Below are positions 154-20,302 of a stretch of DNA of 64,000 bases, piece after piece. Position 1 is the first letter of the stretch; every line of letters begins with the position of its first letter. Below the pieces are notes generated by a model, which searched no databases, was not told the DNA's origin, and saw nothing but the letters and a program-made list of their open reading frames with translations. A program made the position numbers and the translations under genes. The DNA comes from Adineta vaga (Eukaryota > Animalia > Rotifera), in assembly GCA_021613535.1 (NCBI GenBank), contig CP075492.1, positions 3,844,001 through 3,908,000 of the forward strand, in the 5' to 3' direction.

Positions 154-757
154 CTATTCTTTATCGTCTTCATCATCATTCACATAATATTCTTCATCTT
201 GTTCTTCCTCTTCATCAAAAATCGATTCATCTACTGCTGCTGGTATGCTTGTACCACCTCGAGTGTAAGAAGCCTAGAACAATCCAATAAAAAATCATGT
301 ACGATAGAAATACGGTTACTTACGTTCTGTTTCACATGAAATACTAAATTTAACATACCAATCACAACTGGTATTTCTTTTTGTAACTTTTGTAATTCGT
401 TTTTAATAGGTGTTGCTGATAAATAATGTCGAATACGGATCATTTTCTTTCCACTTGTACATCTAATCGAAAGAAGATATTCGAATATTCTTAGATTATG
501 AATCTATCAATATACTTATCAAATAAAATATTTGAACGAGTTGTAATTCTGTAAAGTTTATTCATTACACATGAATACTTATATTTATCGGCGGCTAATT
601 TGTCTCTCTCATTAAGACCAGTTAAAATTTCATAAATTATAGATAAATCATCGGCAAGAGTTGCACACGTTTCTTTGTTTGATGTAACTGTTGCAACTAT
701 ATCCATACCATATTTGATCAACTTGATCACTGTTACAATACCTACTGGACTTGACAT
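154..757 (-). CDS. Stand-alone MLKL/HeLo-like N-terminal four-helix-bundle protein with acidic tail (166 aa, 3 exons)
   Basis: Exons 757-516, 462-324 and 273-154 are joined by GT-AG introns of 53 and 50 nt that keep the frame. The protein reads MSSPVGIVTVIKLIKYGMDIVATVTSNKETCATLADDL...LFDKCTSGKKMIRIRHYLSATPIKNELQKLQKEIPVVIGMLNL...DEEEQDEEYYVNDDEDDKE*. The 'V..NKE.C..La' and 'rfl.a..i..eL..l' patterns resemble the MLKL N-terminal domain. Confidence 0.65.
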
Positions 758-1526
758 ATCGTGATGGAGCAGAAAAACTCTTACAGTTTAATAGTTGTAA
801 CTCTTTTTGATATCAACAATATGATGTGAAATAATGGACTTTGTTTTGTTATCAGAAAACAAACGTTTACTACCTACCTGTCACATGATAAGACAATCTT
901 TCCTTTCTACGAATCATATGCACATAAACTTATTGTTGAAAGTTTCGAAAACCTTATCTCATTATTCACATATAATTAAATATGAATTGCACATTATGTT
1001 TGAAACAATTATAGAAGACTTCTTGAAGTACGAACAAAGTATATTATACTTTTAAGAATATTTTGATTCATGTCCAATTTTCTAAAGATGAAACTAGATT
1101 AATTAGCAGAAGATAAAAGTTACATCCTGTCATTAGTACTTACGATTGGCATCAACCCAAGTTTTCTATCTTGTCTTGTACAGTTTAGAAAAGCTTATAA
1201 TTTAGCTGATAGTTCGATGTTATGTCACCATTTATCAAATTGATATTTTCTCTAAAAATGTGTCCTATTAGTATTATTTTTCTTATTGTAATAGTCATCT
1301 TGAATTGTAGAGTGATAAGAAGGAAAATGTTGACAAAGCATAATAGATCAAATTCTTTCAAAAGATTCTAAGTAATGTGTCGATGAATCTCAACGTTGTA
1401 TTTACACGAAAAAGTTAAATTCAAAAGAAATAGATTCATCTATTTCATACATTTGTCTGACTTGAACAGCTTTTCAATTGAATTATATACACTATCGTAC
1501 TGAATTCCTGCTGTTAAAACTCATGA

Positions 1527-4500
1527 CTAAAGACCTTCGAGTTTCGAAATCGTATTTCTATTAATTTTCTGCGCTGTCTTATAGCATTCGTGAGCTCTTG
1601 TGGATAATCCCATCTTTTCATATACTGAGCCAATGTTGTTGTAAGTTGTAGCGAGGGTGGAATGTTCCGAGGGAAGAGATTTTTGTTGAATGCTGAGTGC
1701 TTTATTGAACTTTTCGAGAGCTACGTCGTTCTTTTCCAACTGAAAGTACACTTTACCGATGTTAATCAAAGTAGAGGCTAAGTCTGAATGATCGGGAGGA
1801 AGAGATTTCTCTTGAATTCCGAGTGCCTTTGTGTAGGTTTCATTCGATGTTGAATAGTTTTGCATTTCGAAATATATTAATCCAATGTTGTTGTAAGTAG
1901 TGGCTAAATTTGGATGGTTTGTATAAAGGATTTGTTTTTGAATAGCAAGTGCTTTGTTATAGTATTCAAGTGCTTTTGAATAATTTTTTATCGTTGAATA
2001 TACTGAACCAATATTGTTGTATGTAATACCTATAGCTGGATGATTAGACTGAAATGATTTTTGTTGAATTTCTAATGCTTTGTTGAAGTGAGCAAGTGCT
2101 GTTAAATTCTTTCCTTTTTTGAGCTGTATTTTCCCCATATTGTTGTAAGTTATAGCCAAATCTGGATGAGTGAGAGGAAGAGATTTTTGTTGAATTTCTA
2201 ATGTTTTGTTAAAGTTTTCCAAAGCTTTTGTGTATTCTTCGTATGTAAGATCTAATTCACCGAAATTGTTGTAAGTCGTAGCCAAGTCGATATGATCAGC
2301 AGAAAAAGATTGTTTTTGAATTTGTAATGCCTTATCATAGTTTTCACGAGCTCTTTTATAATCTTCCTTCTTGAGAAACATTGAGCCGACATTGTTGTAA
2401 GTAGCGGCTAAATCGGAATGTCCAAGAGGAAGATGTTTTTCTTGAATTTCTATTGCCTTGTCGAAGTAGTTACGAGATTTTAGGTCTCCTACCTCATCTA
2501 AATCGACTAGATCAATGTGAATGTAGGTAACGGCTAAATTTGGATGATTTGATGCAGGATTCTTTTTTTGAATATTCAGTGCCTTGTTATACTCTTTTCG
2601 AGCTTTTGAGAAGTGTCCGCACTTGAAGTATACTTCACCAATATTGTTATAAATTACAGCTAAATCAGGATGATCGCTAGAAAGATAATTTTGTTGAATT
2701 TTGAGTGCGTCGTGGTACTCGTCAAGGGCTGTTTTATACTGTGCCCTGGCAGAATAATATGTACCGAAGTTATTATGAAGGATGGCTATTGTTTGATTGT
2801 TTATGAGAGGAAATTGTCGTTGAACCCTCAGTGCTTCTATATAACTCTTAAGAGCTGTTGAATGATTTCCTAGTTTGAACTGTACCTCACCAATACCATT
2901 GTAAGTAATTGCTAAAATCGAATGATTTGGAGAACGAGTTTTTTGTTGAATCCCAAACGCTTTGTTAAATTTTGTAAGAGCTCTTGAGTATTCCCCCAGT
3001 TTAAAATATGCTTCACCAAAGTTGTTATAAGTTGTAGCGGAATCTGGATGATTTGAAGAGACATCTTTTTGTTGAATATCTAATGCTTTTTTATAGTTCT
3101 CGAGAGCTCTGTTGTATTCTCCTGTGTAAGAATACATTAAACCCATGTTGTTGTAAGTAGTAGCTAGATCTTGATGATTAGAAGAAGGAGATTTTTGTTG
3201 AATTGACAGCACGCTTTTGTAATCATCAAGAGCTGCTGAATGCTCTCCCATGTAGGAATGTATTAGACCAATTCGATTGTAGATGGTGATTAATTTCGGA
3301 TGATCAGCTGAAAGTTGTTGTTTTTGAGTATCTAGTATTTCCAGTGCTTTTGAGTAGTTTCTCATCTTGAAATATAGTTCAGCAATAATGTTGTAGCTCA
3401 TCGTTTCGTTCAATGGATCGGAAGGAGGTAAGATTTTGTGATTTTGGGAAATCTTATTGTACTTTTGCAAAGATTTTGAATCATATGGTATACTGTCATG
3501 CCCTAAAATAACGTTATTAAAGATAGAGACTAGAGTGTGATGAGTTGAAGAAAATGATCTATCTATCTAAATGAGTATCATAATTAATTTGGACATTCAG
3601 TTACTATAGAAGATTAGAAATAGTGGTCAACTGAATCGATTATATATATATATATATATGAATAGTTAAATTCAATAAAAGTTAAGTTGCATTCTTACCT
3701 GAAATATTTTCGAATTTATATTCGAGTTCACTTATATTTTTACCAATTTGATTCCATCCTATTTGAACTCTCTTGATTTCTATGATAGACTCATTATTTT
3801 CTTTTTTGAATCCATGAAATTCCATAAAACACCAAATAAACACAAGCATTAGTGCTACGGTGGTGACGAACAATGATAAATTGAATAGGAATGAGTATAT
3901 ATTTCGCAATTTCTTTCTTATTGATTTCAATAACAACTTTTTTCTATTATTTTTCATGGTAGCTACGTTACTCTCATACATATCTTTATCATATTCATCC
4001 ATCTGAAAGTCACCGTTATTTTGTTCACGTCGATTAGCTAAATTCAAGTTCAAATCAAATATAAATATCCGCTTATTTTACTTATATAACGTACGCAATT
4101 CGAAAGATAGTTTATCTTTCTCACCGTCTCGTTGTCCAAACATTTGATTGCCAACGGGCGGCATAATTTCCGATAAACTTTGAAATGAATAATTTAGATC
4201 AACATCACGATTTCTATTCAAATTTTCTAGACAGAATCGAAAAACAAACAAATATATTTTGAAAAACAGAATAGATTTACCTCTCAATAGATTTGCAGCA
4301 TCAAAACATTGAATTTCATCGAATGCATTGATGAGATAACTGAAATCTCGATTATTTATTTTATCTCGATCGAAAAGACAATCCATCAGACGTAAAGTCC
4401 CACTTAATGATGGATCATCTCGGATTCTTCGTGGAAGATCTTCATCACCACCAAGATAAAAATGCAGACGTGTTCGATCATCAGCAGTAAGACGATCGTG

Positions 4501-4539
4501 AATATTCAATATGGTAGCACGTAAACGAAAATTATTCAT
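1527..4539 (-). CDS. Type II membrane receptor: DED - TM - coiled coil - ~14 42-aa TPR repeats (901 aa, 4 exons)
   Basis: Exons 4539-4281, 4226-4095, 4037-3699 and 3502-1527 are joined by three phase-1 GT-AG introns (54, 57, 196 nt), total 2706 nt in frame. This unites ORFs 4078-4575, 3682-4053 and 1527-3470. It has a DED-like N-terminus (MNNFRLRATILNIHDRLTADDRTRLHFYL...CFDAANLLR), a basic patch then a TM segment (IYSFLFNLSLFVTTVALMLVFIWCFM), and HPDLAxTYNNIG repeats. Confidence 0.85.
3641..3659. repeat. (TA)n microsatellite in intron 3 of the DED-TPR gene
   Basis: tatatatatatatatatat run. Confidence 0.9.
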
Positions 4540-5140
4540 TAATACTCTTTCTTTATCCTTAAGAAGAAAAAACATATTTTCAAGAAATCACTTGATTTTT
4601 TTTCTCGTTAAAACGAACCATGGTATTCGCCGAAGAGTTATATGTTTAGATCGAATTAATAGTTTGTTATTTTCGTATAGAATATTTCATAAATGAGAAA
4701 GGTTATTCATTCCCCACATCACACTTCGATCTTCCAAGAGGCAATTAACTTTCTCTTGGAAAGATAAAGAAACAAACATATACTGATGAAATATCAAATT
4801 CAATGAGAAAAACATGATTTTCTAGTGAAATGTCAATTAAAATACGTGATATTTCATTATTTGTTTTTTTAGACAAGTTAAAACGAACACAAAACGTTTT
4901 GAAAGTGTATACATTCTTATCTCGTTACTTTTTCTTTCCCATATATTTTTTTATATTTGTATTTTCAGTTAATGACTCATAGAATACGAAAATCTGTTCT
5001 TATGTCATTACATTCATTTGACTCATGTTATTATTTGTACAAACGAGAATGAAAAAGCAACAACAACGACAACGAAGCTATGATTTCTTAACCATACACA
5101 CTTGTTCTCACTCAGACATTTCACAATTGATGATCAAACA

Positions 5141-6346
5141 ATGGGGGTTCGTAAAATCAAAAGAATCATTTCTTCATCGTTTTAATTCTTATTTCTATAG
5201 TCAGGTGCGTCCATATCGAAAATAGAAGACGATTTTTTCAATATTTGCTCAAGTGGAGATATTAAAAATGCTCGTCGCTTGTTGCTCACGATGACATATA
5301 AAAAATTCAATCGTCAACGACGAAATGGAAATACTCCTCTTCATATGGCTTGTCTAAACGATCATAAGGATATTATCATTTTATTACTCAACGAAGAAGA
5401 TGTTTGTGCTAGAACTTTACGTAATAAAGATGGCAAAACTGCTTATGATTGTGTGAAATCACCTGAAATTCGACAATTATTTCGTCGTTCTCGTGAATCA
5501 ACAGTCGATCGATTTAGTGAAAAGAATCCAACATCATCTCTTCAACCAATTCTCTCACCAAATGATGATGAAATAAAGATTTCTCATGAACAAATTCCCG
5601 ATGATTGGGTTCGTGGTTATACAAATGCAAAGCAAAATTTTGATGGACAATTTATGCTTGCTCTACAAAATGCGCCATTACTATTACGAGCATTGATGAA
5701 AACACGAACCATCAATGAAGCTGAAGATACATTCGAAATTTTTCTTGAAAAATGTATCGAACATCAACCAAATAAACGTTATTTAATTCGCGAAGAATAT
5801 AAAAGATATAGACAAACAAAAAATGTCGAACATTTATTAACCATTTATACATTTGAAACAATTGTTTACAAAGCTTTACAACAAGAAATGAATGCTTATA
5901 CTACATTACTTTTTCTTAATTTGAAAAAATTAGTCAAACGATCATATCAAGGAAGAACCTATCGAGGTGCTCAAATGACTCAAATAGATATTGATGCGTA
6001 TACATGGGCACAAAAAAGTAAAGACTTTCTTTTAGAAACACGTCTATTTCAATCAACATCAAAGACAAAAAATGTCGCAGAAGTATTTGGAGAAGCTAAT
6101 CCAAGATCGGACAAGTATGGTGTTGTATTTGCCTATATATTTGATGAACAGTGTCCAACTGCTATTGATCTTCAAGGTATTTCATATTTTGAAGAAGAAG
6201 ACGAAGTTCTGCTGTTTCCGTTTACATTATTCAAAGTGGATAATATAATTTTTGTTGAAGCATTAAGACATTATGATATTTCTCTTCGATATATTCCATC
6301 ATCGAAAAAATCATTTCTTTCATCATGGTGGAATGCAAAAGAATAA
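5141..6346 (+). CDS. N-myristoylated ankyrin + R-S-E clade (arginine-type) ADP-ribosyltransferase
   Basis: A 6-nt coding exon 1 (ATG GGG, 5141-5146) and a 54-nt intron (5147-5200) give the N-terminus MGSGAS. Ankyrin motif GNTPLHMAC...NKDGKTAYD. ART motifs YRG, FQSTS and ISYFEEEDEVLL. Confidence 0.85.
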
Positions 6347-6404
6347 ACATATTATTATTTCAAAATTGATCTTAATAAAAAAAACAATAAAAAAGAAAAT
6401 GTTT

Positions 6405-7377
6405 TTATTCTTGGATTTTCATTGAACTATCAACTGATAGTTTTGTCTCTACAGGAATAGTGTCTTTTTCTGTGGGATTGACATCTTTTAGAGGCGGTAA
6501 AACTTTTGAAGTCGATGTTTCATCAGTTACAGATACTTCAGTAGCATTCGGTAAATCTTGTTGAGTATCAGAAAGTTGTGCGACGGGTACAACAGTAACT
6601 TGAGTATTGCCTTTTTTTCTGCCACAAAAATGTTTCCAAGTTTTATAACCACAATATATACCGTAAATAATTGAACATATGCATAAAACGATATAGACAA
6701 TTTCACCGTATGTTTTTACATAACCCAAACATTCAGACGATCTAGGAGATAAGTAGAACATTGCTTGTGAACCCTGTAGAAAAATTCATTTCATATCAAT
6801 CTAAATATCAGTTGATTACTAATTCATTCTTACCGGTCCTATAGACCAACTTAGAACACCACTACACATGCCAACTGTAAAAATAAATGCACGACGAAAT
6901 GCTTTTTCACTAGTATTATATTTGATGACTGTTGCTACTAAAATCTATAATCAATGAAATGATATGATGAATAGAAAAAAGAAGCATGAAACAAACCAGA
7001 AGAATCAAGGCAGTGACAAGAATTATACTCATAGCGCCTAATACAATCAACCAAATTGGTATTGATGGTTGACGAGGTAGATAACAATGTCGATTGTATG
7101 CAATTACACCGAATATTAATGAAACTATTCCAATAATACCAATAAGAAATAGGAAAATAATGATAAATAATTTCTTCATTAAGAATTTAACATGAATTTT
7201 GATTGAGTCGACACCCACTCTTCCAAGGTTTTCTTGTAACGGCTTTATTTGACGATCACGAAATAGATCGATAATTGGTTGATGAGCTTTTGCATTGAAT
7301 TGAAAGCGTGCTTCCTAGAAGAAGAAAAAAAGATCACAGCTATTCTAAACATTATCTTTCATCTATCTTACTCCCAT
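6405..7377 (-). CDS. Multi-pass membrane protein, TMEM272-like
   Basis: MG micro-exon at 7377, then ORFs 6916-7218 and 6405-6761 joined by short introns. There are several TM segments, the motif HCYLPRQPSIPIWLIVLG, and a low-complexity C-tail. Confidence 0.6.
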
Positions 7378-7904
7378 CGTTTCGTTTTGATATACTTTTC
7401 ACTAACGAATTTTTCGAGTCTCAATAGTGGTTTATATACAGCTGTGCTTGAATAATAACCTGAGTCAACAATAGCCGTGTTGCAATGTAAATAAAGGCAA
7501 AAATCATATTATTTTTGTTTCTAAGGAATATTTGTATTAATCAAATGACGGTAGTTGAAAAATATAAAATCATGCTAAGAAAGAATTAACATATTGACAT
7601 CATTTCGAAATAACTTACACTTGTTCGCCTTTTTCATTCAATACGTCTGCGCAAATAGTAAACCACATTAAAAATAATCAATCAATCTAGTAAATAGATT
7701 GTTTTTTAGCGTAGAATGTATTTATCGTAAAATCGTTTTAATGAAAAGAAGTACAGAATCTCTTCAACAACATAAAATTTCATTTTATTGGAGAAAAGAA
7801 TTGCTTTTACAGAACAAATGGTACATTAAAAATATTTCTATTTAGTCTCTGTAAAGAACAGCGTTTTCTTATCTTTTAATAAACTATCAATTAAAGAAAT
7901 AATC

Positions 7905-8655
7905 ATGCCATTTCATTACAAAAAAGATGTATCATTTGATATATATCAAAAGCCATTACACAAGAATATCTTAAATGGCAAAAGATAACACATCAAAAGA
8001 TTCTTCTCCAAATCAACGTTCAGGTTATTATAATCAAAAACTAGAAGATATGTTCTTTCAAAATCTTGTGGAAAATGCACGTAAAGATCAATTTGATATG
8101 CCATAATATGAAATGTTACCAGTTACAGATGATATTCAACGTCAATTATGTTCTCAACCAAACAAATCTTATTTCAATCAATTCCAGTAATTAATTATAA
8201 AGATTTAAATATTAATTTCAATACTTCATTACGTCAATGTTCATTTGGTATTGTTTATAGAGGTCGATGAAGAAATCAAAGTGTTGCTATTAAATAATTA
8301 CATTTAAATAAATTAACTCGACAAGAATAAAGTTCATTTGTTAAAGAGATAATAATCATGTCAAATTTAGGTAAACATCAAAATTTAGTTGATCTATATG
8401 GTTATACATTAGAACCACTTTGTTTGATTCAAGTACATTCAGTAACTGATTTTGCAAGAACATCATCGTCTATCGCATCATCAAGAACATTCAATGAAAT
8501 TATTCAATCGACCAAGAATCAGTTCGAAAACAAAAAAATTTTTGAAAAATTTTATTGAAAAATGTTGGCATCAAAACCCTCAATATCGACCGGTTATCGA
8601 ACAAATTTTGAAAGATTTGAAAGCATCATGTGTTAAAATCCGTGATTCTTTTTAA
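7905..8655 (+). pseudogene. Decayed TKL-like protein kinase
   Basis: Reads SFGIVYRGR*RNQSVAIK*LHLNKLTRQE*SSFVKEIIIMSNLGKHQNLVDLYGYTLEPLCLI, then jumps to subdomain XI (FIEKCWHQNPQYRP). It has in-frame stops and the HRD/DFG core is deleted. Confidence 0.8.
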
Positions 8656-11498
8656 CTGAAAAGCCTTGGAAATTGTAAATCCCATGTTTTTTTGAAGAAT
8701 TCTTCATTTTGATTTTGAATATTTAATTCATGTTTAACATGAAATACTGTTGATTCAGCATACATCATCGATTTAGTTTGAATATCAACTTGAAATAACG
8801 ATGGATCTGGAAAATAATATTTTATATTTCGTTCAATTTCGATACGCGCTGATTGAGGATCGATTATTTGTATTTCATAAGCACTTTGTACTGTTTCATC
8901 AAATACTAAACCATCGGGATATTCGATACAACCATCGTCTTCCTTTATCTGAATTAGAATATTAAAAGATAATTCTTGTAAAGTAGTTTTCTTATTACTT
9001 TTAATGTCACTATTTGCGTGCTTTCATCAACTATTCGATGGCGTTGACTGGAACCTTCTCGTAATTGTTTTATTGGAATACCTTGTGCAATTTCTGGCAA
9101 AGCAAAATCATTTCGTAATGAACTAAACAATTCTGAAAAATATCTTCAAAAGACATTTCAATCGAATTATCTTACTAGTTTTCCATCAGACGTGGTAATT
9201 TCAAAACACATGGTGATGACTGATCAAAATGTATTCTAATCGAGCACAAAATTCCTTCTCCATTGAATTTAAAATGATCATCTTACGTTAATGTTGTTGA
9301 TGTAGATGAAGGCCATACTAATGGCCAATATGAACTTGATAAACTTAAACGAAGACGACAACCAATTGGAAGACATATACATACACCTGATAAAGTAACA
9401 TCAATACTTTAAAGAGAAAAATTCGAAAAGAAAATCTCATAAGATAATTAATGTGAATACAAACGTGTAAATTTGATCAATATTCAATTCTTCTGGATGT
9501 TCATGTGATTTGTAATGTGTTAAATTAAGTATTCCACGTGCAAGAAGAATTGATGCTGATGTTTTTTCATCGATCATATTTAAACGAACACAAATTAAAC
9601 CATTTGGTTCATTTGAACTTAAATTCAATTGAACACTTGGAAATCCGAATAATTCTGAAACAGAAAAGAAAATTACGACAATTTCATTTCGAAATTACCA
9701 TATTGTTCCGTTAATGGAAGGGAATCAAAGCATAATGAATGTCCATCGTCAAGTCGTTGATCAATTGGATGAGTTGGAAGATGTGCTGCTCCAAATCCTA
9801 AATAATTTCCACCTGCTAAACCAGTTATTTGTGGTGAGAAAAATGATATTTCCTTGGGTAATTCATCTTGTACAATTGGTTTCGTTTGTAATGATTGATA
9901 CGATAAATAATAAACAATTTCGTCTTGTTTGGATGTATAATCTTCTTTATTCATGGATAAAAGATCATTTCTTTGATCATGTTCTATTGGAAATGATGGA
10001 AGTTGATTGAAATGAATCCATTTTCCTTTTCGTTCGATAACTATCGAGCGAAGTTCATCCAAATTTGGACTTAATTGATAAATCGAAAACATTTCCTTCT
10101 TTTCATAACCATTTCGAATACCTAGAATATTCTTCATTTAATAATTGATTGAATATCACACGACAAACCTTTTATATGATAATCTAACCATGCAATAACT
10201 TCTTGTAAAAATCCGATTTGTGGTCCAGGATACGCATCGTCTCTGAAAGATCGAAATATTTCTGAAAGAAATAGGAAAGAAATTTTCAACTCACGGCCAT
10301 TGATGTCCCCAAGGACCAATGATAGCACGTTTCGGACATGTTAATCTTGACATTAAACGAAAAACTGGATCCGTATAGAGATCAGCAAATCCACCAATTA
10401 AAAGAACTGGACAAGATATCTTCGAATAATCTTCACAAATACTTCCATATCGCCAGTAACTATTTCTAAAAATATCCAAGTTTTTTCTCTCAATTTTCTC
10501 ACTCAAACAAACCGAGTTTGATGTTTCATCCAATAGAAATCCAATGGTATCAATTGATTCAATCTTTCTCTCCAAATATCTTCTAAATTACTCTTTTCAT
10601 CAATTCCTCCTTGGTAAATCGGATGTGGTGGAATTGATAACCATATTAACATTTGAGTTGACCATGCCAATGCTAAAGAGAGAGAGAGAGAGTCTTAAGT
10701 GTTTCTTATCGAAATATAGAGTTCTAATACCTTCTTGTGCAGCTAAACATCCTCCATAATAATGAATATCATCACTATAACGATCATCAGTTGAATAAGC
10801 AGAAATAATTCCAACTAAATTCTACAAAACAGCACCAATTACTTATTGATTTAATCGAGTAAATAAGGATATACTTTCGGTTGAAGTGAACCAATTTGTA
10901 ATCCATTAAATCCACCCCATGATTTTCCATACATAACAACCTTAGATGAAACATATGAAATAATCTTGGATCTGTTATATTCCTGTTACTTTTCCATTCG
11001 ACCAAGTTTGTTTTTCTATCCATTCAAGAATTTCTAGAGCATCTGATTGTTCTTGTTGACTATATTCATCATCAAATATTCCTTGAGAATTTCCTGATCC
11101 TCGTATATCAACTCTCAATGAAACATAACCAAATCCGGTGAAATATTTCAATCGAATTTCATCTCGTTTTGATCTAAATTTTTCCAAAGAGAAATAATCT
11201 TCTTTTTCTAAATACAACTCTGATTCAAACTTACGTCCAATCAGCTTTTCTATATGGTAAATATTCTAAAATAGTCGCAAATTTTTCTTTATTTTCTTCT
11301 TTGCCTAAAACAAAAAGAAAAAAAGATAAATACATTCAGCGAATACTCATCAATCTAACTTTTCGGCATCCAGATATTTGCTGCTAATTTAATTCCATTA
11401 TTGAGAACGATTGTGACTGTTGTCCATTTTTCAATTTCATATGGAAATTCTGTACGAATCGAATGATTTGTATCAATAACTTTCAATGTTGATTCCAT
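8652..11498 (-). CDS. CocE/NonD family (peptidase S15/PepX-like) serine hydrolase, bacterial type, ~11 introns
   Basis: Motifs include MESTLKVIDTNHSIRTEFPYEIE, ILEYLPYRK, RVDIRGSGNSQGIFDDEYSQQEQSDALEILEWI, nucleophile GKSWGGFNGLQ, YWRYGSICEDY, IIGPWGHQWP, PGPQIGFLQE and DQRLDDGHSLCFDS. Confidence 0.88.
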
Positions 11499-11885
11499 TG
11501 ATCTATCGAAATATAATATACGTGTGTTTGATATAGTCGACGCAGAAAATATTCACTCTTTCTGAATAAAGAAAACAACATCGACTTACACGTGCGCTAG
11601 ATTTCAACTATTCTTTTTCTCTTATCTTTCTATATTAAAGGTTGCTGCTGTTTCTATATCATCGTTTTACGCACTATAGGATAGAGTCAGTTTTTTTAAA
11701 TAAGCATAAACGAAATTTAAAAATTATGGAAAGAAATATAGTTTATTTAATTGTAATTGTTTTATTCATATTTTCTGCTGATATATAATGATTAGATTTT
11801 TAATTTATTACATTTCTCAAGAAAATATTGAATACATATTGACATATTAATAACATTTGTCAGGAAAAAAACATAGAGAAAACAG

Positions 11886-12145
11886 TTATTTGCCAGGATT
11901 ATAATAACATCGTCCATTTCTCCAGCTTGGATCATTCTTCTGACAATGCATTCCGTCACAACAAGTTGCTTGTGCACCATTGTCACCAAAACATTCAGCA
12001 TCATGACCACCACACTAGTTCAAATACATAAAATAATCAATAATTTCAAATCAAATAATGTTCATCTAGTTACTGCTTGACAAACAACTGCAAAAGCAGC
12101 AAACAACAAGGCAACAAAAAGAATATATGTAACAGCTTTGTTCAT
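11886..12145 (-). CDS. Secreted inhibitor-cystine-knot (knottin) peptide with C-terminal amidation signal (66-aa precursor)
   Basis: Exon 1 (12145-12074) encodes the signal peptide MNKAVTYILFVALLFAAFAVVCQA. After a phase-0 intron, exon 2 (12014-11886) encodes CGGHDAECFGDNGAQATCCDGMHCQKNDPSWRNGRCYYNPGK*. This gene is not in the ORF track. Confidence 0.85.
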
Positions 12146-12923
12146 TGTAGAAGAATTGGTCGAAGGCAAAATGTTGGTAAGAAGTTTTGGTATATGAAGT
12201 TATTCTAACTAGAACGCATCGCTTATATAGATGAACGATCACCCATTCAATAGTCATTGTTTAATTGGTTAACCCTCGAAATAAGAAGATGATTACATGA
12301 TATCATCTCTCTCTTTCATTATTTGTTTTTGTTCTACATAGTACTATTTCGTATGACGATGATGATGATGATATCATATTATCGAGAATAGTTAAAGAAC
12401 TATGAACGAAATGCCATTCGCCTATTTATCAAAATCAATATAAACCAATAGAACGGAGTGACCTTGTTATCTTTAGATTTTAAGTTGAATAAAACATACT
12501 AGGACGATAACGATTTAGTTGAAATTTGTTTCTGTATTCTATAGTATAAACACGTCATTTTCTAATCGAGACTTTTCTCTTCTCTTTCTTTATTCGAATT
12601 CGAGCATGTTCACAGAACGATTCATTATCCAGTCGATAAAATAACTATTTCAAAATTCGTTCTTACGAAATCAATGTTTTTTTTCATCATTTCAAGAATT
12701 TATCTTAGCAGTATATCTATCGATGAGAGGAAATGTATGTTTTCTTTTCTTTTCTGATCTTAAGTCACTTGATATTCTATTGGATAATCACAAATTTTGT
12801 TACAGTAGAAAAATTTCACTTGTGACCTCGTATCTTGTTCACTCTCATATGACATCACTGATAATCCATTCTTTTAAGGAAGAACGGAAAGAGAGAGATA
12901 TTACATTTTATACCAAAACTATG

Positions 12924-12966
12924 TCTTCTACAATGAATAAAGCTGTAACATATATTCTTTTTGTTG
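12924..12966 (+). pseudogene. Truncated inverted copy of the knottin gene's 5' end
   Basis: tcttctacaatgaataaagctgtaacatatattctttttgttg nearly matches the reverse complement of ~12112-12154. It encodes MNKAVTYILFVD*. Confidence 0.75.
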
Positions 12967-13192
12967 ATTAATAATTAAAACAATATCTATATTAGGAATA
13001 AAATAATCTATATATGATTTTCTTTTGCATTGCCATAAGAAATCAAAATTCCATAAAGAAAAGATTCGTGGTGCAAATTTCGAAATAAGAATGAAGAAGA
13101 AGAAGGAGGAAAAAAACTTGGATTTCTTCTACACGTGCCGATAAAAGAGTATAATACATGTGATGTTAAAAACGAGAATTTTCTTCTTCCAA

Positions 13193-14869
13193 ATGAATAA
13201 AATGAAGTTCGAATGTTTACCAAATGAAACTCTCATCGAATTTTTTCATTATTTATCTTCCGTAGATATTTTTTATTCATTCGATCAACTCAATCATCGA
13301 TTTTCGAAACTTATTCGAGCACTTCGATTACATCTCGATTTTCGTCATGTTCCCAAATCAATATTCGATCGATTTTGTCAACAAATACACTCCGATTTAC
13401 ACATCCAAACACAAATTCATGCATTATATCTATCCAATCATCACACACCTGGTCAAATTCAAACATTTTTATGTCAATTTTCACTTCGAATATTTCTCAA
13501 TCTTCAGTTTTTATCTTTAACTGAAGTTCGAATACATAATATAAACAAACTTCAATCAATACCACAACTAACTTTCTTACATCTTGAAAGTACTTCCTAT
13601 GATAATGAAATCATTTCTGCATTACAATTATCTCAATTACGAAAACTCTCATTATCAAATCAAACTTTAGAATTTCGAATAAACAAGTATGTCTTATCAT
13701 TAACACATTTAACTATATCTTCATATTCATTATATGATTTATATCATGTTATTAAATCTCTTCCAAACTTACGATATTTAAATGCTCGAATTTCAACCAC
13801 ATTTTCCAATAGACGATTAACAAACGATTTGGATCATCATTCTTGTATTCATTTAAAGACACTCATTCTAAATCATTCGAACTATGATTTTCATCAATTT
13901 GAAATCTTTTTCCAAATCATACCTAATCTAAGACATTTAACAATCATTCATAATCAGAATTCGATTGATATCGATCAATGCCAACAATTGATTATAAATT
14001 CTTTCAACCAATTGAAAACTTTTCAATTTATATTCATCGTCAAAACTATGAATAACGATTGTACAATACAACATCGTTGGTGTAGTGAATATATTTGTGG
14101 AAGAGATTTTATATATATTTATACAATTCCATATCCATCAAATCAGTTTATATTATCATCCGAATTGATTCGATATCGAAATGAATTAAAAATGGAAACT
14201 GGTCATGTATTCGATCAAGTTACTGAATTAACTTTATATATGAACGTACAACAAAAAACGAATCACTTCTATTTTCGTCATATTCAATCGCTAATTCTAA
14301 AAGGTTCATTTATTCACGGAACAGATGATGAAATATGGATACAAAAACAAGAATTTATTAATTCATTAGAATCTATGATAAATTTCACTTATCTGAAACA
14401 TATTACTTTAGACCAAGTCTCTTCAGATTTATCATTTGTTTTATTAGAAATCTTTCGACGAGCACCACAACTTTCAACATTAAAATTGAATCCACAAATT
14501 TTAATGATGTTAATTAAGGATCAGAAATTATGTCAATATTTCAACGAATATATTAAAGAATTGAATGTATCTATTTGTTTGTATCCCTTATATATTGGAA
14601 CAAAGGAAATGAAACAAATATGTTCGATTTTTTCGAATCTTAACGAATTGAATTGTGCGGCTAAAAATGTGGATGAAATTTTGTTGATTCTCAAATCTTT
14701 ATCAAAATTAACAAAATTAGAAGTACAATTGGAAATTTCAGATATTGGAGAATTTTTATTATCTGAAGTGAAAAAACAAAGTGAAGAAATGAAAATAACA
14801 TTTACAATCGAATATAAAAATGAAGAAAAGGAAGTGATGTGTTTTGGTATTGATAGAAAACTTGCCTGA
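13193..14869 (+). CDS. F-box / LRR-like protein (intronless)
   Basis: N-terminal F-box FECLPNETLIEFFHYLSSVDIFYSFDQLNHRFSKLI, followed by LxxLxL repeats and a YTIPYP motif shared with the paralog at 22633-24345. Confidence 0.8.
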   Translation: MNKMKFECLPNETLIEFFHYLSSVDIFYSFDQLNHRFSKLIRALRLHLDFRHVPKSIFDRFCQQIHSDLHIQTQIHALYLSNHHTPGQIQTFLCQFSLRIFLNLQFLSLTEVRIHNINKLQSIPQLTFLHLESTSYDNEIISALQLSQLRKLSLSNQTLEFRINKYVLSLTHLTISSYSLYDLYHVIKSLPNLRYLNARISTTFSNRRLTNDLDHHSCIHLKTLILNHSNYDFHQFEIFFQIIPNLRHLTIIHNQNSIDIDQCQQLIINSFNQLKTFQFIFIVKTMNNDCTIQHRWCSEYICGRDFIYIYTIPYPSNQFILSSELIRYRNELKMETGHVFDQVTELTLYMNVQQKTNHFYFRHIQSLILKGSFIHGTDDEIWIQKQEFINSLESMINFTYLKHITLDQVSSDLSFVLLEIFRRAPQLSTLKLNPQILMMLIKDQKLCQYFNEYIKELNVSICLYPLYIGTKEMKQICSIFSNLNELNCAAKNVDEILLILKSLSKLTKLEVQLEISDIGEFLLSEVKKQSEEMKITFTIEYKNEEKEVMCFGIDRKLA

Positions 14870-17328
14870 AATTGTTAAATGATAACAAACCAGTCTGAAT
14901 TTCGTATGAATATGTTCAAAGTTTCGGTGTTTTTTCAACAATATATGTTACAATAAATGAATTATAAGCAATGATTTTCAATATGTGAACTGATTAAAAA
15001 CTTGATTTTTCTCTACAGTTGATCGTTTGATATCGAAATAGTTTTTGTTTGGCCTTGTAATCTATATGTAAAATCGAAGTGTTGATTAAATCTCTTAATA
15101 TACTCTTATCTTGTAAATGACAAACACTTTTTCGCAGAATGAAGATTTTTCATTCAGTAGATTAATGGTACTATCACAGCGTACATATAAAATAGATCGC
15201 TTTCGTTGACTTTATCAGTTGTTCTATTCAGAAGGATTGATATCATACTGCTGCAAGCTGCTATTGTTCTGTTTTCCGTTGGTTTTTGTGTTATGAAAGC
15301 ATTCGATCCTGTTACAAGAATCCAATCCCAAAACATCCAGAAGTGACGGCTTGTCGCTTGGCAAACAATCCGAGTGACATTGTGGAATTGGTATCAATCT
15401 GCAGTGTGCAAACAAGTCTGTGACATAGCAGCTGGATGTGCGGGTCAGTGCGGATAGGTGGAAATGTTTAACAAGCCAACCAAAATTATGTGGAAAAGTT
15501 GATGACGGAAGTAGTATGCTTATCATATACAATATTACCAAATCCGTGCTATCGATTGGTTCTCTGATCATAGGTCGTCGACGGATTCGATACAATGACG
15601 GATTGGATTAATGGATAGAAAAATATGCTTCTGTTTTTGAATGTGAATCCTACCTTTCTCCTTTCCATTGACTTTATCTTAGTATTCCGTAATTACTGAT
15701 TCATAAAATTCACTACTGGAAACCAGATTGAAAGTAACAAATGAAATTCGTAGATGTCGTTTGAATAATATTTACAAAAACTAAAATATGACTTTATGAA
15801 ATATGATTCAAAATCTAATGATAATATTTGGAATAGAAGAGATATAATCAATGTAATATATTGAACTAGGACTTTTTTTTGAAGAATTTCTTCAGTGAAA
15901 ATGATCAATTTTAAAAGACTACTAACGGTATCAACAAAAAGTAACATGGGTCCTCCATATTGATAAAGAGATTTTGTGATTAATTTTAATAATATATAAG
16001 TGAATCGATAGATGCAGACATGATGAAGAATCTCTAGTTCTGTATAGTAGAGAAAATTTGTTCTTGATTTACTGACTAATTTTAATGAATTTATCCGAAG
16101 TGAAAAATTAACATTAGATTTTAGAGTACTTAGTTTTTCATGAATGTTTTTGCGATATAAGAAAAGAATTCTTTTGAATTGTTTATAATATTCACTTTGA
16201 TTTATTATTTGTAGCTGTTTTTTTTATTGATAGGCGAAGAACGAGAAAATAATAGTTGTAAAATTTAACATCCCTTTTGAATTCTAAATGAAAAAATTTT
16301 ATATAAAGACTGATGACGACATTCTATTACTTATTTCACTAGAAGTTACATTTCATCATGTTTTTTATATAAGCGAAGTTCCATAATGGAATTAGTTTAT
16401 ACAGAAATATATAGCGTTCGATATCAATCATTAGAAACTGTTTGAATTGTTTGTCCTATGAAGATCGACTGTGATACTGGGTTCGATACTAAATCTTGAA
16501 CTCCAGTTGAATGTAGAAGAGAGCCGATATTCCATGCACAGATTGAATTCAAGCAGCAATTGAATGAGGTATTATATCCAAAGGCTCAAATCTCACAAGC
16601 ATCAAAACTTGTAATAAAGCATATTTAACCACCACATATGCAGCAGCAAACCAACCTGAATAGAACGGTTGATTACGTGCTGTACGACATTGAATAGTTT
16701 TATGTTGAAGAAGTAAATGAATACCGGCTGAAATAGTAAAAGCAATGGTGAAACTACGCTTTCTTTCATTTCCTCGCATATCACAAATTCTATCGTTCCT
16801 ATGCAAAACACTCGCTTATAAACTCAAATAGCAGGGACAATAAAAGAATGTATACGGAACGAATATTAAATAAAAGTCTGCATGTAGTAAACCCTTTTCC
16901 ATAACAGAAGCTCCCGAAGACGTATAAACTATCATTAGCCTGGAATGATTTTAGATGTATAAAAAGATTTTACGAGAGATAATATAAGAAAATGAATCGC
17001 ATTCTTACCGAGAAACGTTGATTTTCGACGGTTTGATGATAAAATCACTGATAAAAATTTTCAAACCAAAAGGGCTTTTAATATATCTTTTCATCTTTTT
17101 TAGTTCCACGGGGGGAACTTCTATCATGAGGAGAAGTTTACGGATAAAAGGAAAATAATATTACAGGATATGAAGAGAAGTAAGAATAGAAAGAGTATCA
17201 TTACATTTTACAGTAAGAAGATTAGCAATTATTATACTCTTTTGTTATCAATTTGTTTCGTCAATAAAATAATTAAAACTAGCATTATAGCTCGTGAAAT
17301 TTTTAATTCTGTTTATTAACAAAAAAAA

Positions 17329-18535
17329 TCAATTATCTGAAATAATAATTGTTTGTTCAGTTTGTTCAACAATTGTACTAATTAATACTTGATATTCTTC
17401 AACAGCATCAACTTCAGCAATACAATTAAGTGAATAAAAGACACATCGTAAAGCTTGACTAAAACGGAAAACTGCATGTTGATGACTATGTTTATAAACC
17501 ATATATCTCCATAATAATTCGATATAAGTATCTTGAATACGCAGAATTGTTTTTCTATTCACAAAATTCTCATCTATACTCACACTAAAATTTGTATAAT
17601 CTGTCGTAGAAAATGATAAAATAGCAATTAATAATTTAACAAATGTCATATCGTCATCAAGTGTATTCTTCATACCAACGAGACCTTTGGTAACACATAA
17701 TCCAAAGATAATTTCATTCATGTGAAGAAATAATGGATCATAAAGTAAATTCGTATAATGTAAGACAACTAATCCAGCAATACTTGACACATTTTTAACT
17801 GTTTTATGTACTAATGTACATTGATCTTGTAAACATAGAGATAAAAAATCCTTATTTTTTCCATGTCTTTGTTGAATCTCTGTATAAATTGATGTATAGA
17901 GTTCAGTAACAGCATCTGATTTATAACGTAATCGAACAGGTAAACTATTTTGTTCAATAACGAATGTTTGAGCAATTGAAAGTGGACCGTTTTCATCATA
18001 ACAATGAATTAAATTCGAAATATGATTCCATTGATCGATAGATAATGTTGATTGATCAGATTGTAAAAGATTTACTGTTGGAATCTAAAATAAATTCGAA
18101 ACAATTGATCGTCATTTATCGATATTTTTTCGTACTAAAATATTTGATATGACTATTGGTGTTGATGGAATGATTTTCATCTTGTTTTGTTTCGATAATG
18201 AACATCGAATTAATTCAATTTGCATTCCATTAACAAAACATTTTCTCAATCGACATGCCGAACATAAATGACGAGTTTGAATATTTATATGACAATTATT
18301 ATTAAAATCACATTTGAAAAGTTCCTTACAAAAGAAAATAATCTATGAATTATCTTTGAAAGAATAATTCACGTTTATTTACTTGTCCTTTCTTTCCATT
18401 CCGTCGGAAAAACATTTTACATGCAGAACATGTCATCGTGCCATAGTTGGAATGTTCAGCATAGTCTCCACAAATTCGACATTCGTGTAGAAAAGTTGTC
18501 GAATTTAAAGATAAAATATTAGATGTTGTTGTCAT
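17329..18535 (-). CDS. Nuclear hormone receptor (C4 zinc fingers + ligand-binding domain), 3 exons
   Basis: CRICGDYAEHSNYGTMTCSACKMFFRR | CDFNNNCHINIQTRHLCSACRLRKCFVNGM | an LBD-like helical region ending EQTEQTIIISDN*. The third exon is open from ~18085 to 17329. Confidence 0.88.
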
Positions 18536-18611
18536 TGTTAACGTTTACTTGATTTTATAGGAGATAAATCCTACACAAAACGTGGATGTCGATTTATAAA
18601 TAGAAACAGAA

Positions 18612-18758
18612 ATGAAATGTTTTTTTTTCACCGTCTAATGGAGAAGAAATGACAGAATTGAAATGTTTTTTTGCCCTCTTATAGAGAAAAAAATGTTAGC
18701 TATAAAATGTTTTTTCGCCCTCTACCGGAGAAGAAATGATATAGAAAGAAAATGTTTC
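18612..18758. repeat. Degenerate ~45-bp tandem repeat (about 3 copies) upstream of the nuclear receptor
   Basis: Units resemble aaatgttttt(t)cgccctctanyggagaagaaatga, repeated at ~18616, ~18661 and ~18705, with a partial unit at ~18750. Confidence 0.65.
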
Positions 18759-18953
18759 ATTCGAAGCGATGCATTATTCTACTTATGTTATACAGAATAG
18801 AAAGAAAACGTCATGTACTCAGCTATTTGGTCCACTCAGTTTCAATTTATCGTATAGTGACTACATACAATGGACTTGAACAACCTTTATGTTTGAAAAA
18901 AATATTCATTTTAATTTGACAGAAGAAAATGTCAGTATAGAACAATAATATTA

Positions 18954-20302
18954 TTAAGTTCGTCTACGATACCAGATAAATTGTAATTGATCGATGAGTA
19001 TTCCACATTTTCCTTTTACATAACCTATTGTAAATCCATCGAATTCTTCACTAAATTTTTCATCGGAAGGTTCGCCGAATAATGGACTTTGTCGTCCTGT
19101 TGCTGTGGTAAACTGCAATCCTGTTACGACTACAATATTATGTTCCGTCTCATCACTCATCTGGACCATCTGATGAGCCAAATATCCTTCAACTTTGACG
19201 AATCTTTCCCATTCATCTAATATAAATCTTTTTGATTTCTCAAACGATCGTATTTCGTCACCTCGAATCGGACCATAGGTAATGTTTTTATTGTCATTAG
19301 AATATGAGTAAATAAATTGAATAGATGTTAAAATATCATCGCCATCAATTTCTCCATAGATTCCACGAAGATACGAAGAACATGTGAAGTTATTCGATGT
19401 TGAATCATCGAAAGAACCACCACCTGATCCACCGAATTTATTACCAATGAGTCTGATTGTTCTCTCAAAGAAAACAAAAAGCAACAAGTTTTTCAATTGA
19501 AATTTTCATAAACAAGATCTAACGTTTTTCATTATTTAACTCAGATATTTTATTCATTTTCCAGATTAAAAGACTTGCTAATATTCCAATTGCCACCAAC
19601 GATAAAAGTACATAGAATAAAATAAAAATACATACCAATGAAGATTTATTCAATTTTGATCGATTTAATGATGATTTATCGTGATCACTTATCGTATTAT
19701 TTAATAAAGAAATATTTGTTTCGTCATTTATATTACGAGCATTATTGCTACGAGAACTGTTTTCTTGACTAGCAATAGGTGCATTATATATATCTAAAAT
19801 TTCGATCGATTGAGAAGCAAATTAAGAATTAGGTTTACTCACTATTATTTATAATAGTTACATCGTGTTCCTCTTCTTCTGAATCTCGAGGAATATCCGG
19901 TAAAAATCGACCTTGTATCAGTGGCATTATTGATACTAAACTTTGAATCGATTGATGTAAACCATTGGATTCTAGTTGTTCTCTGTATTCTATAGAAATA
20001 TGCTCATATTAAAAAGAAAGTGATATTTCGATGAAGGAAAAGATGAGACCTCTCAACAGTTGAGCAGCATCGATACATTCAATTTCTTCAAATGCTTCGA
20101 TCAGAAAAGTAAAGTCTTTTTCATTAATTTTATCTTGATCAAAAAGAGATTCCATAAGAGTAAGTGTCCCATTAAGTGACTTATCATCTCTTATTCGTCG
20201 AGGAACATTGTTACCCATAAAGAAATGAAAACGTTGTCGATCTGCATCACTTAGACGAGCATCGAGTTTTAGAATGACGCTACGTAATCGATATTGATTC
20301 AT
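18954..20302 (-). CDS. Type II membrane receptor: DED - TM - jacalin-like lectin
   Basis: Exons 20302-20050, 19989-19843 and 19793-~19524 are joined by phase-1 introns (60, 49 nt). The TM segment is LVCIFILFYVLLSLVAIGILASLLIW. The jacalin domain reads GNKFGGSGGGSFDD...TGLQFTT...GKCGILIDQLQFIW. The last splice junction is ambiguous by one nucleotide. Confidence 0.75.

Follow-up and report, generated by a model that had tools for sequence, protein, structure and literature searches.

Can a death effector domain (DED) be part of a membrane receptor itself, combined with a sensor module that is exchangeable? This question is raised by two minus-strand genes, here called gene 1 and gene 2, in a 64,000-nucleotide stretch of the Adineta vaga genome (G000:C3:3844001-3908000; hereafter the window). 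The genome is a chromosome-level assembly of 100.8 Mb in six contigs with about 30% GC, and its proteins carry NCBI locus tags beginning with I4U23_. An earlier interpretation made from the letters alone (the sequence-only reading) had proposed that both genes encode the same cytosolic DED, a linker and a transmembrane (TM) helix, followed by tetratricopeptide repeats (TPRs) in gene 1 and by a jacalin-like lectin in gene 2, and that these proteins unite receptor and adaptor in one chain.

Innate immunity and cell death in animals are wired through death-fold domains, and to our knowledge DEDs are known almost only as the link from FADD to caspase-8-type proteases. Bdelloid rotifers are asexual animals under strong fungal attack, and we know of essentially no description of their immune receptors. 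In our analysis the observation proved real and far beyond chance, and the architecture is well supported at the level of the family. The best explanation, which we hold to be slightly more probable than not, is that the two genes belong to a bdelloid multigene family with constant DED, linker and helix and an exchangeable C-terminal module, the members of which would act as type II receptors.

The fold of the N-terminal domain

The N-terminal domains of gene 1 and gene 2 have 84-86 residues and are 61% identical to each other; the two genes lie on the strand and at the positions which had been given for them. The genes of the window were searched exon by exon. In these searches neither domain reached the curated Pfam cut-off for DEDs (PF01335, 35.9 bits): gene 1 scored 23.2 bits and gene 2 27.1 bits, each over positions 2-71 of 82. 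Other members of the family are above it, with 39.1, 41.1 and 38.7 bits in a genome scan and with 36.8 and 38.3 bits for the proteins P0198 and P0262 (P and L numbers are our handles for proteins and loci). The Pfam scan of the genome gave 33 DED matches, all of them among the 53 which were found with the DED exon of gene 2 as the query, and seven exceeded the cut-off. Three of the latter, of which two are on L055 and L057 and the third on L056, precede a membrane helix or a jacalin exon.

The proposal that this domain is a death fold of the DED type was borne out by profile and structure comparisons. In hhalign, an alignment of 24 family sequences matched four DEDs of the same genome which are over the Pfam cut-off with a probability of 99.6% (E 9.7e-25, 82 columns). 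AlphaFold2 predicted six helices from the family alignment (predicted local distance difference test 71.5), and the top seven Foldseek matches were all DEDs (caspase-8, cFLIP, FADD, PEA-15; TM-score 0.57-0.67). With VIA-align the top 13 were DEDs (Z 8.3-9.5, 75-79 residues, root-mean-square deviation 2.6-3.0), PYD and CARD structures reaching at most 8.2 and death domains at most 7.3; because the margin over other death-fold subfamilies is about one Z unit, the DED subfamily call is soft. A PDB sequence search with the DED profile returned weak death-fold matches only (Dronc CARD, E 0.11; caspase-8 DED, 0.88). UniProt automatically names the orthologues 'DED domain-containing protein'. The hydrophobic H-F-F/Y-L stretch in helix 2 of the family sits at what we take to be the position of the F25/L26 patch of FADD. 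A complex prediction with four copies of the gene 2 DED gave a score of 0.11, the mark being 0.32.

By sequence comparison and modeling, the N-terminal domain is a DED-type death fold. With the DEDs of FADD, caspase-8/10, cFLIP, PEA-15 and viral FLIPs it shares the six helices and a clear profile homology, and these are its best structural matches. However, DEDs of the FADD/caspase-8 type sit in a soluble adaptor or protease, whereas the bdelloid DED is found at the N-terminus of a membrane protein.

The gene family and its two members in the window

The search with the DED exon of gene 2 (E 1e-3 or better) gave 53 matches in the genome, six of them with internal stops. The family comprises about 50 loci in A. 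vaga, a few of which are broken. The phase-1 intron that had been noticed at the same point in both genes is a constant feature: the codon that follows position 84 is interrupted ('one base then GT') at every one of the 26 loci inspected, with position and phase unchanged. About 25 loci show the order of a DED followed by a module on the same strand. The C-terminal modules are of at least seven kinds (those of A. vaga are given in the last rows of Table 1), so that the further variants predicted by the sequence-only reading are indeed numerous. GH16 and ricin-B modules are added by other bdelloids, and a Didymodactylos carnosus protein (P0244) has a form with ricin-B and jacalin. The tabulation covers part of the 53 loci, about 20 being covered with a 1.5-kb flank or not at all, and leaves out the subgroup L024, L026-L029.

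In a profile search of 1.84 billion cluster representatives only 256 hits were obtained at E 1e-3 or better. Thirty of them were looked up: 26 are named and all of these are bdelloid (A. vaga, A. ricciae, A. steineri, Rotaria socialis, R. sordida, R. magnacalcarata, Rotaria sp. Silwood1, Rotaria sp. Silwood2 and D. carnosus), the other four being unnamed metagenome proteins. Going by the named hits, the family is specific to bdelloid rotifers. Our literature searches found no description of a DED-TM-module family; a survey of rotifer lectins left out membrane proteins by design (PMC8878817).

That DED, helix and C-terminal module form one protein is well supported for the family. A bioreactor-metagenome contig (L061) encodes the protein P0203 in a single uninterrupted open reading frame (ORF) of 466 codons with DED, membrane helix and NHL repeats. 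Helix and NHL repeats share one ORF in L042, and helix and jacalin share one in L032. Annotated models likewise join the parts, as DED-TM-NHL (P0126, P0133, P0159, P0179), DED-TM-jacalin (P0129, P0153), DED-TM-DM9 (P0152), DED-TM-GH16 (P0125) and DED-TM-TPR_12 (P0198/P0305); such models were found in A. vaga, A. ricciae, A. steineri and R. socialis. A hydrophobic 19-mer within an ORF, 400-1000 nucleotides past the DED start, is present at 22-23 of 24 loci, compared with 9-25% of 600-nucleotide control bins further downstream. The linker with its QSL..IMP motif is present in both window genes and aligns with annotated relatives. In some database models the helix is absent, a point which is taken up below. 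An acidic E-E-D-K/R motif between QSL..IMP and the helix is conserved in many members and several species (e.g. window 19843-19989).

The DED is far better conserved than the module, with 83% versus 49% identity between gene 2 and its A. ricciae orthologue. A maximum-likelihood tree was computed from the DEDs of 25 A. vaga sequences (84 columns); its inner branches are poorly resolved. On this tree module types change nine times, the minimum being five, and NHL and jacalin types occur on both sides of a split with 100/98 support. The DED closest to that of gene 2 (71%) sits in an NHL-type gene. As the exons are separated by phase-1 introns, the modules are exchangeable in frame. The exon shuffling postulated in the sequence-only reading fits the uniform intron phase and the interleaving of module types on the tree. 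This pattern may reflect repeated in-frame exchange of the last exon, yet the same could result from gene conversion of the DED exon. With exchange as the cause, the family would be a clear case from nature in which phase-1 introns allow modules to be exchanged in frame.

Two composite arrangements were seen among the NHL types. At L034:2836-4584 an NHL-type DED gene is followed by an ADP-ribosyltransferase (ART) domain and further NHL repeats, and the A. ricciae model P0211 (1565 residues) merges DED-NHL with ART-TPR, which is probably an annotation fusion of neighboring genes.

Table 1. Features of gene 1 and gene 2 (window positions) and C-terminal modules at family loci of A. vaga; a slash within a donor or acceptor sequence marks the splice site
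Feature	Position or loci	Strand	Remarks
Gene 1, exon 1, DED-like	4281-4539	minus	Pfam DED E 8.4e-5, profile positions 2-71 of 82; ends one base into split codon; phase-1 donor G/GTAAAT
Gene 1, intron 1	between 4281 and 4226	minus	G/GTAAAT...CTAG, phase 1
Gene 1, exon 2, linker with QSL..IMP motif	4125-4226	minus	phase 1 at both ends; aligns to residues directly after the DED in annotated bdelloid proteins
Gene 1, intron 2	between 4125 and 4037	minus	G/GTGAGA...TTTAG, phase 1
Gene 1, exon 3: basic stretch, membrane helix, short stalk with NxS/T sites	3699-4037	minus	phase-1 donor G/GTAAGA; sequence reading, translation
Gene 1, predicted membrane helix, 23 hydrophobic residues	3823-3891	minus	hydropathy and flank reading; N-side flank strongly basic
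Gene 1, intron 3	between 3699 and 3502	minus	G/GTAAGA...TTTTAG, phase 1
Gene 1, exon 4: 15 kinesin-light-chain-type TPRs, stop codon included	1527-3502	minus	TPR_12 E 1.6e-138; acceptor TTTTAG/GG, phase 1
Gene 2, exon 1, DED-like	20050-20302	minus	Pfam DED E 4.8e-6; phase-1 donor G/GTCTCA; identical to residues 1-84 of NCBI model P0137
Gene 2, exon 2, linker with QSLVSIMP and acidic run	19843-19989	minus	phase 1 at both ends; junctions as in P0137
Gene 2, exon 3 (NCBI version), Asn/Ser-rich spacer	19636-19793	minus	ends TTG/GTATGT; P0137 mapped on window
Gene 2, stretch coding for membrane helix, 26 hydrophobic residues	19561-19638	minus	in frame with exon 3; almost wholly within P0137 intron 19464-19635
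Gene 2, remnant of ancestral phase-1 donor, C/GTTAGA	19519-19524	minus	in-frame TAG at 19521-19519; compare A. ricciae L058, C/GTAAGT
Gene 2, last exon, jacalin-like lectin domain, stop included	18954-19463	minus	Jacalin E 4.1e-13; P0137 acceptor CTTTGAG/AGA, phase 0; 100% match to P0137 residues 187-355
Jacalin-like module	gene 2, L032 (twice), L039, L044 (twice, one weak), L048, L016	same as DED	downstream of DED
NHL propeller module	L031, L034, L036, L038, L042, L046, L025, L030	same as DED	downstream
TPR_12 module	gene 1, L033, L043, L045, L050	same as DED	downstream
DM9 module	L040, L041, L047	same as DED	downstream
Cys-rich tail	L037b / P0136	same as DED	downstream
Short tail or unclear	L037a, L035, L049		

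For gene 1 the parts named by the sequence-only reading, a DED, a TM exon and then a different module, are present in the sequence. Its start is the ATG at 4539; an upstream in-frame ATG at 4575 reads ATA in the closest paralogue, L045, which lies 195 kb away. The two genes are alike in exon order and are 93% identical in the DED (DNA) and 89% in the TPRs (protein). All three introns of gene 1 are GT..AG and in phase 1, and the TPR-type gene of A. ricciae likewise has four exons, all phase 1. The L045 homologue of exon 3 has its own consensus phase-1 donor after the helix (A/GTAAGT), and L045 keeps the acceptor TTTTAG/GG together with homologous coding sequence after it (a 5' coding extension). 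The internal Met of the gene 1 TPR ORF, which could be the start of a TPR-only protein, is Thr in L045. Because this Met is not kept in L045, and because an A. ricciae DED-TM-TPR gene exists, the joined gene 1 model is favored. The proposed join to the TPR exon rests on splice signals and on one A. ricciae model. In the TPR_12 search this exon scored 451.6 bits, above the cut-off, in 11 stretches, and the repeat motifs are spaced by exactly 42 residues; with 15 repeats the count is close to the 14 or so given by the sequence-only reading. The search with the TPR exon found only ART-TPR relatives of about 40% identity and no database protein for gene 1 itself. A (TA)n microsatellite is located at window 3632-3670, inside the proposed third intron.

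The other module was also correctly recognized. The jacalin exon of gene 2 scored 50.4 bits over profile positions 3-135 of 136, the cut-off of PF01419 being 22 bits; in PDB it had no sequence match at E 0.01 or better. NCBI has a protein for this gene, P0137, with 355 residues, which agrees with the first two junctions. In position, the in-frame hydrophobic stretch of gene 2 is homologous to the membrane helix found in the A. ricciae orthologue and in the paralogues. The helix-jacalin join was not confirmed (see below).

Proposed receptors in the membrane and the alternatives

The proteins of the family begin directly with the DED, without a signal peptide, and have one hydrophobic segment of 19-26 residues that lies 120-240 residues in. 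Signal-anchor proteins, in which a folded N-terminal domain and no signal peptide precede a single helix, are inserted with the N-terminus inside and the C-terminus outside. Since the family proteins lack a signal peptide and have about 150 folded residues ahead of the helix, type II insertion is predicted, with a cytosolic DED and a module that is exposed outside the cell or in a lumen. In gene 1 and L045 the N-side flank of the helix is much more basic than the C-side flank.

A mechanism in which such receptors act through DED filaments appears plausible from the sequences. We infer receptor function, type II orientation, ligand binding, clustering and DED assembly as its parts. After type II insertion of the proteins, ligands with several binding sites, for the most part glycans of microbes, would draw the modules into clusters, and the DEDs thereby brought together would assemble and recruit another DED protein. 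This partner would not be of the caspase-8 or FADD type, because none was found.

The only other DED architecture seen in the genome is a pair of adjacent plus-strand genes which combine DEDs with a DEAD/ResIII helicase (G000:C5:14943583-14949514; L051:1012-3233 and L052:1480-3241). The first of them has tandem DEDs; all three DEDs are over the Pfam cut-off and two keep an RxD-type helix 6. Judged from their domains, these genes look like RIG-I-like receptors (RLRs) in which DEDs replace the CARDs, but a RIG-I C-terminal domain was not confirmed. DED-bearing RLRs occur in lophotrochozoans (PMC8998645). Possibly, bdelloids have a DED signaling network complete in itself, in which about 50 one-piece surface receptors, each with a cytosolic DED and a phase-1-shuffled module that binds glycans or other patterns, converge with the DED-helicases by DED-DED assembly on a further effector, without caspase-8 or FADD, and splicing of the membrane exon switches between membrane-bound and soluble forms. 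We propose this wider scheme only tentatively and consider it less likely to be right than wrong.

Several observations weigh against the receptor reading. In six-frame scans of the genome, which give lower bounds, none of the 53 DED matches was found in one gene with a caspase or Death match, even though there are about 70 Peptidase_C14 and 18 Death-domain matches. The caspase match nearest to a DED (C3:3843317-3844029) is 4.3 kb from the DED of gene 1, with the TPR exon and another gene in between; the next nearest is at 12 kb, and none of the 18 Death-domain matches is near a DED locus. DED-caspases, for which the sequence-only reading had advised a search of the same genome, were thus not found, in agreement with the report that rotifers are without a DED-containing caspase-8 (PMC12066828). 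As neither a DED-caspase nor an adaptor with DED and death domain was found, a classical output like that of the death-inducing signaling complex is unlikely. Furthermore, the Arg of the canonical RxDL motif in helix 6 is an invariant Cys in the family (CxDA); R-x-D-hydrophobic is kept in the DED-helicase genes and in L053 of A. vaga. The positive-inside rule is not consistently followed either: in 56 family proteins the two flanks of the helix contain 182 versus 178 Lys and Arg.

The TPRs of gene 1 belong to these adverse points as well. Their nearest relatives are bdelloid ART-TPR proteins without signal peptides, 115 of 120 of which have no N-terminal hydrophobic segment. These ART-TPR_12 proteins (e.g. 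the NAD(P)(+)--arginine ADP-ribosyltransferase models of A. steineri) have the same 42-residue unit as gene 1; they are presumably cytosolic and carry an ART head and no DED, whereas gene 1 has the DED. Because the relatives lack the N-terminal hydrophobic segment, the array of gene 1 is of cytosolic origin, and gene 1 would be a TPR-type member that borrowed its array from the cytosolic ART-TPR family. An exoplasmic TPR array would be odd. TPRs after a membrane helix are the least comfortable part of the receptor model, and the term 'TPR ectodomain' is doubtful.

Further points on this side concern the transcript data and some gene models. No transcript evidence was found for any junction of gene 1 or gene 2. 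In presumed-RNA reads over window 1500-4700 no splice junction of gene 1 was seen; the assembled matches cover only parts of 1555-3171 (the 3' part of the TPR exon) and a 37-nucleotide DED fragment. Since the read contigs on the TPR exon are 95-99% identical with many differences, they represent another strain or a paralogue. The NCBI model of the gene 1 paralogue, P0150 (I4U23_011712; L045:500-5003, G000:C3:3651785 onward), omits the TM exon and the TPR exon. As an alternative gene structure, in which DED and linker are joined to an unrelated ORF about 3 kb downstream, this model was rejected: it needs a 2.8-kb intron that holds an intact 677-codon TPR ORF and the TM exon, and is thus likely a chimera.

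In gene 2, finally, P0137 has no membrane helix, as it splices 19636/19635 (TTG/GTATGT) to 19464/19463 (CTTTGAG/AGA), and the junction from TM to jacalin is degraded, with the donor C/GTTAGA, the acceptor CTTTGAG and an in-frame TAG. In the A. ricciae orthologue (P0140, genomic locus L058) the genomic DNA keeps the full exon with Asn-rich spacer, 23-residue helix and coiled-coil-like stalk, ending in ...NEK, followed by the consensus phase-1 donor C/GTAAGT, a 55-nucleotide intron and TTTCAG/AA. The sole route in gene 2 that keeps both helix and lectin is a poor GTTAAA donor at 19540. A transcript retaining the membrane stretch would stop 13 residues after the helix, without the jacalin domain. 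An exact search for P0137 in assemblies, in which a transcript contig was sought, gave no record. Gene 2 thus descends from a DED-TM-jacalin gene in which the junction between helix and lectin decayed; its present product is probably either a DED-jacalin protein that is soluble or a DED-TM protein that is truncated, if not both of them.

Part of this evidence could also be explained by soluble cytosolic sensors. The hydrophobic stretch would then be spliced out, and the resulting DED-lectin or DED-TPR proteins would be akin to the sensor and adaptor parts of NLRs without the NTPase. Four NCBI models (P0137, P0145, P0140, P0241) are indeed without all or part of the helix; the intron that removes the TM segment of gene 2 has good signals (GTATGT...polypyrimidine-AG, phase 0), in contrast to the degraded junction that would keep it; skipping of the TM exon of gene 1 may preserve the reading frame, because all introns are in phase 1; and TPR_12 arrays of bdelloids are otherwise cytosolic. 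Yet when the four TM-less models were mapped, the genomic DNA of all four was found to keep a hydrophobic ORF, in frame and where it was expected; introns would not conserve this across species. In two of the models the supposed intron interrupts an ORF that is otherwise continuous. The helix is retained in the intronless ORF of L061 and in many annotated models. Since T-rich helix-coding DNA resembles an intron in a genome with 30% GC, most TM-less models are likely prediction artifacts, alternative splicing of the helix being the other possibility. We regard soluble sensors as a rather unlikely explanation. Independently of this question, bdelloid gene models often drop the T-rich helix-coding stretch, or half of it, as an intron (gene 2 19464-19635; L048, L058, L059), a lesson for annotation in these animals.

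Somewhat less likely still are adaptors of the MAVS type, in which the core of DED, linker and TM helix would be anchored in an organelle membrane and nucleated by the RLR-like DED-helicases, the C-terminal modules being secondary luminal additions. In MAVS too a death-fold domain at the N-terminus is followed by a low-complexity linker and a single membrane helix, and the two adjacent helicase genes L051 and L052, of a kind known from lophotrochozoans (PMC8998645), could act upstream in the same genome. Four proteins (P0196, P0224, P0231, P0166) end 8-30 residues past the helix, which is a tail-anchor layout, and the TM-keeping transcript of gene 2 would end in the same manner. However, MAVS has a CARD and a C-terminal anchor, whereas the bdelloid proteins have a DED and most of them large, intact and diverse lectin or propeller domains past the helix, which suggests that the family exists for the sake of these domains; the unconfirmed RIG-I C-terminal domain of the helicase genes speaks against this explanation as well.

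The proteins could also be membrane proteins without an immune role (adhesion, development, secretory-pathway lectins) that use the death fold as a cytosolic interaction module. NHL propellers, jacalin domains and TPRs act outside immunity too, and DEDs such as that of PEA-15, which is among the best structural matches, serve signaling other than death. The lineage-specific expansion, the pseudogenes, the module swapping and the fast-evolving modules beside a conserved DED are on the other hand typical of immune repertoires, and the set of modules (jacalin, DM9, GH16, ricin-B) consists mostly of glycan binders, so that we think this improbable. Very improbable is a mere artifact of gene models with DED-TM genes and downstream TPR or jacalin ORFs as separate neighbors: an internal ATG in the gene 1 TPR ORF could start a stand-alone protein, the TM-exon ORFs of both genes hit stop codons shortly past the putative donors and no RNA junctions were seen, but in the jacalin exon a start codon is missing ahead of the domain, the paralogue of gene 1 lacks the internal Met and keeps the acceptor and the upstream coding sequence, single-ORF cases exist (L061, L042, L032), the order of DED and module recurs at about 25 loci on the same strand, and independent annotations join the parts.

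Known receptor systems and neighboring genes

If the proteins are type II receptors, the nearest functional likeness would be to the type II C-type lectin receptors (Dectin-1, DC-SIGN, CD23). In these, a short cytosolic signaling part at the N-terminus is followed by a signal-anchor helix, a stalk and, at the C-terminus, a domain that binds glycans, and they signal by ligand-driven clustering. By analogy of layout, this is how the bdelloid family would most plausibly work, although the folds differ (jacalin, DM9, ricin-B, GH16 and NHL versus the C-type lectin-like domain) and the cytosolic part is a whole death-fold domain instead of an immunoreceptor tyrosine-based activation motif-like or other short motif. 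TNFR-type death receptors (Fas, TNFR1, DR4/5) are likewise membrane receptors with a cytosolic death-fold domain that assembles after ligand-driven clustering, as we suppose for the bdelloid proteins. They are, however, type I proteins, with a Cys-rich ectodomain and with the death domain at the C-terminus, and depend on FADD for their link to DED proteins, whereas the bdelloid receptor would carry the DED itself in the opposite topology. No Death or TNFR match was found in any exon of the window genes. In function the bdelloid family would thus be closer to type II lectin receptors than to death receptors of the TNFR type.

According to the sequence-only reading, animal death receptors use death domains and not DEDs. 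Among membrane receptors of animals an exception has been published: in the oyster Crassostrea virginica, about 50 membrane proteins that arose by lineage-specific expansion carry a DED-TRADD-N module on the intracellular side (Kaur et al. 2021, PMC8195603). Like the bdelloid family, the oyster family is large and lineage-specific; its single-pass proteins have a cytosolic DED, as is predicted for bdelloids, and a constant and a variable part made from domains common in immunity. In the oyster the extracellular Cys-rich domain, the TM helix and DED-TRADD-N are constant and the variable part is cytosolic, whereas in bdelloids the N-terminal DED is constant and the variable module, dominated by lectin folds, follows the helix. 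No TRADD-N match (E up to 1) was found in the linker or the other exons of the window genes. From cnidarians, oysters, amphioxus and others it is already established that lineage-specific expansions can combine variable domains with a death-fold adaptor that stays constant.

Should the receptor reading be true, the bdelloid proteins would be a compact design of receptor plus adaptor, comparable to type II lectin receptors. They would also point to outputs of DEDs beyond caspase activation and offer a first handle on pathogen sensing in bdelloids.

Between gene 1 and gene 2 lie minus-strand exons of a Peptidase_S15 gene (X-Pro dipeptidyl-peptidase-like, E 2e-14; window 9437-11217), and because this gene intervenes the two DED genes are no tandem pair. 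A plus-strand ORF at window 5279-6346 stands head-to-head with gene 1 and contains an ankyrin repeat and a weak match to NAD:arginine ADP-ribosyltransferase (E 1.3e-4, just below the cut-off). The Peptidase_C14 match G000:C3:3843317-3844029 adjoins the start of the window, downstream of gene 1 and on the same strand, next to minus-strand ORFs (window 154-757). Directly downstream of gene 2 a minus-strand exon encodes a nuclear-receptor C4 zinc finger (zf-C4 E 5e-9; window 18350-18535), and an ORF at 17329-17790, which is without a Pfam match, may be the ligand-binding part of the same gene.

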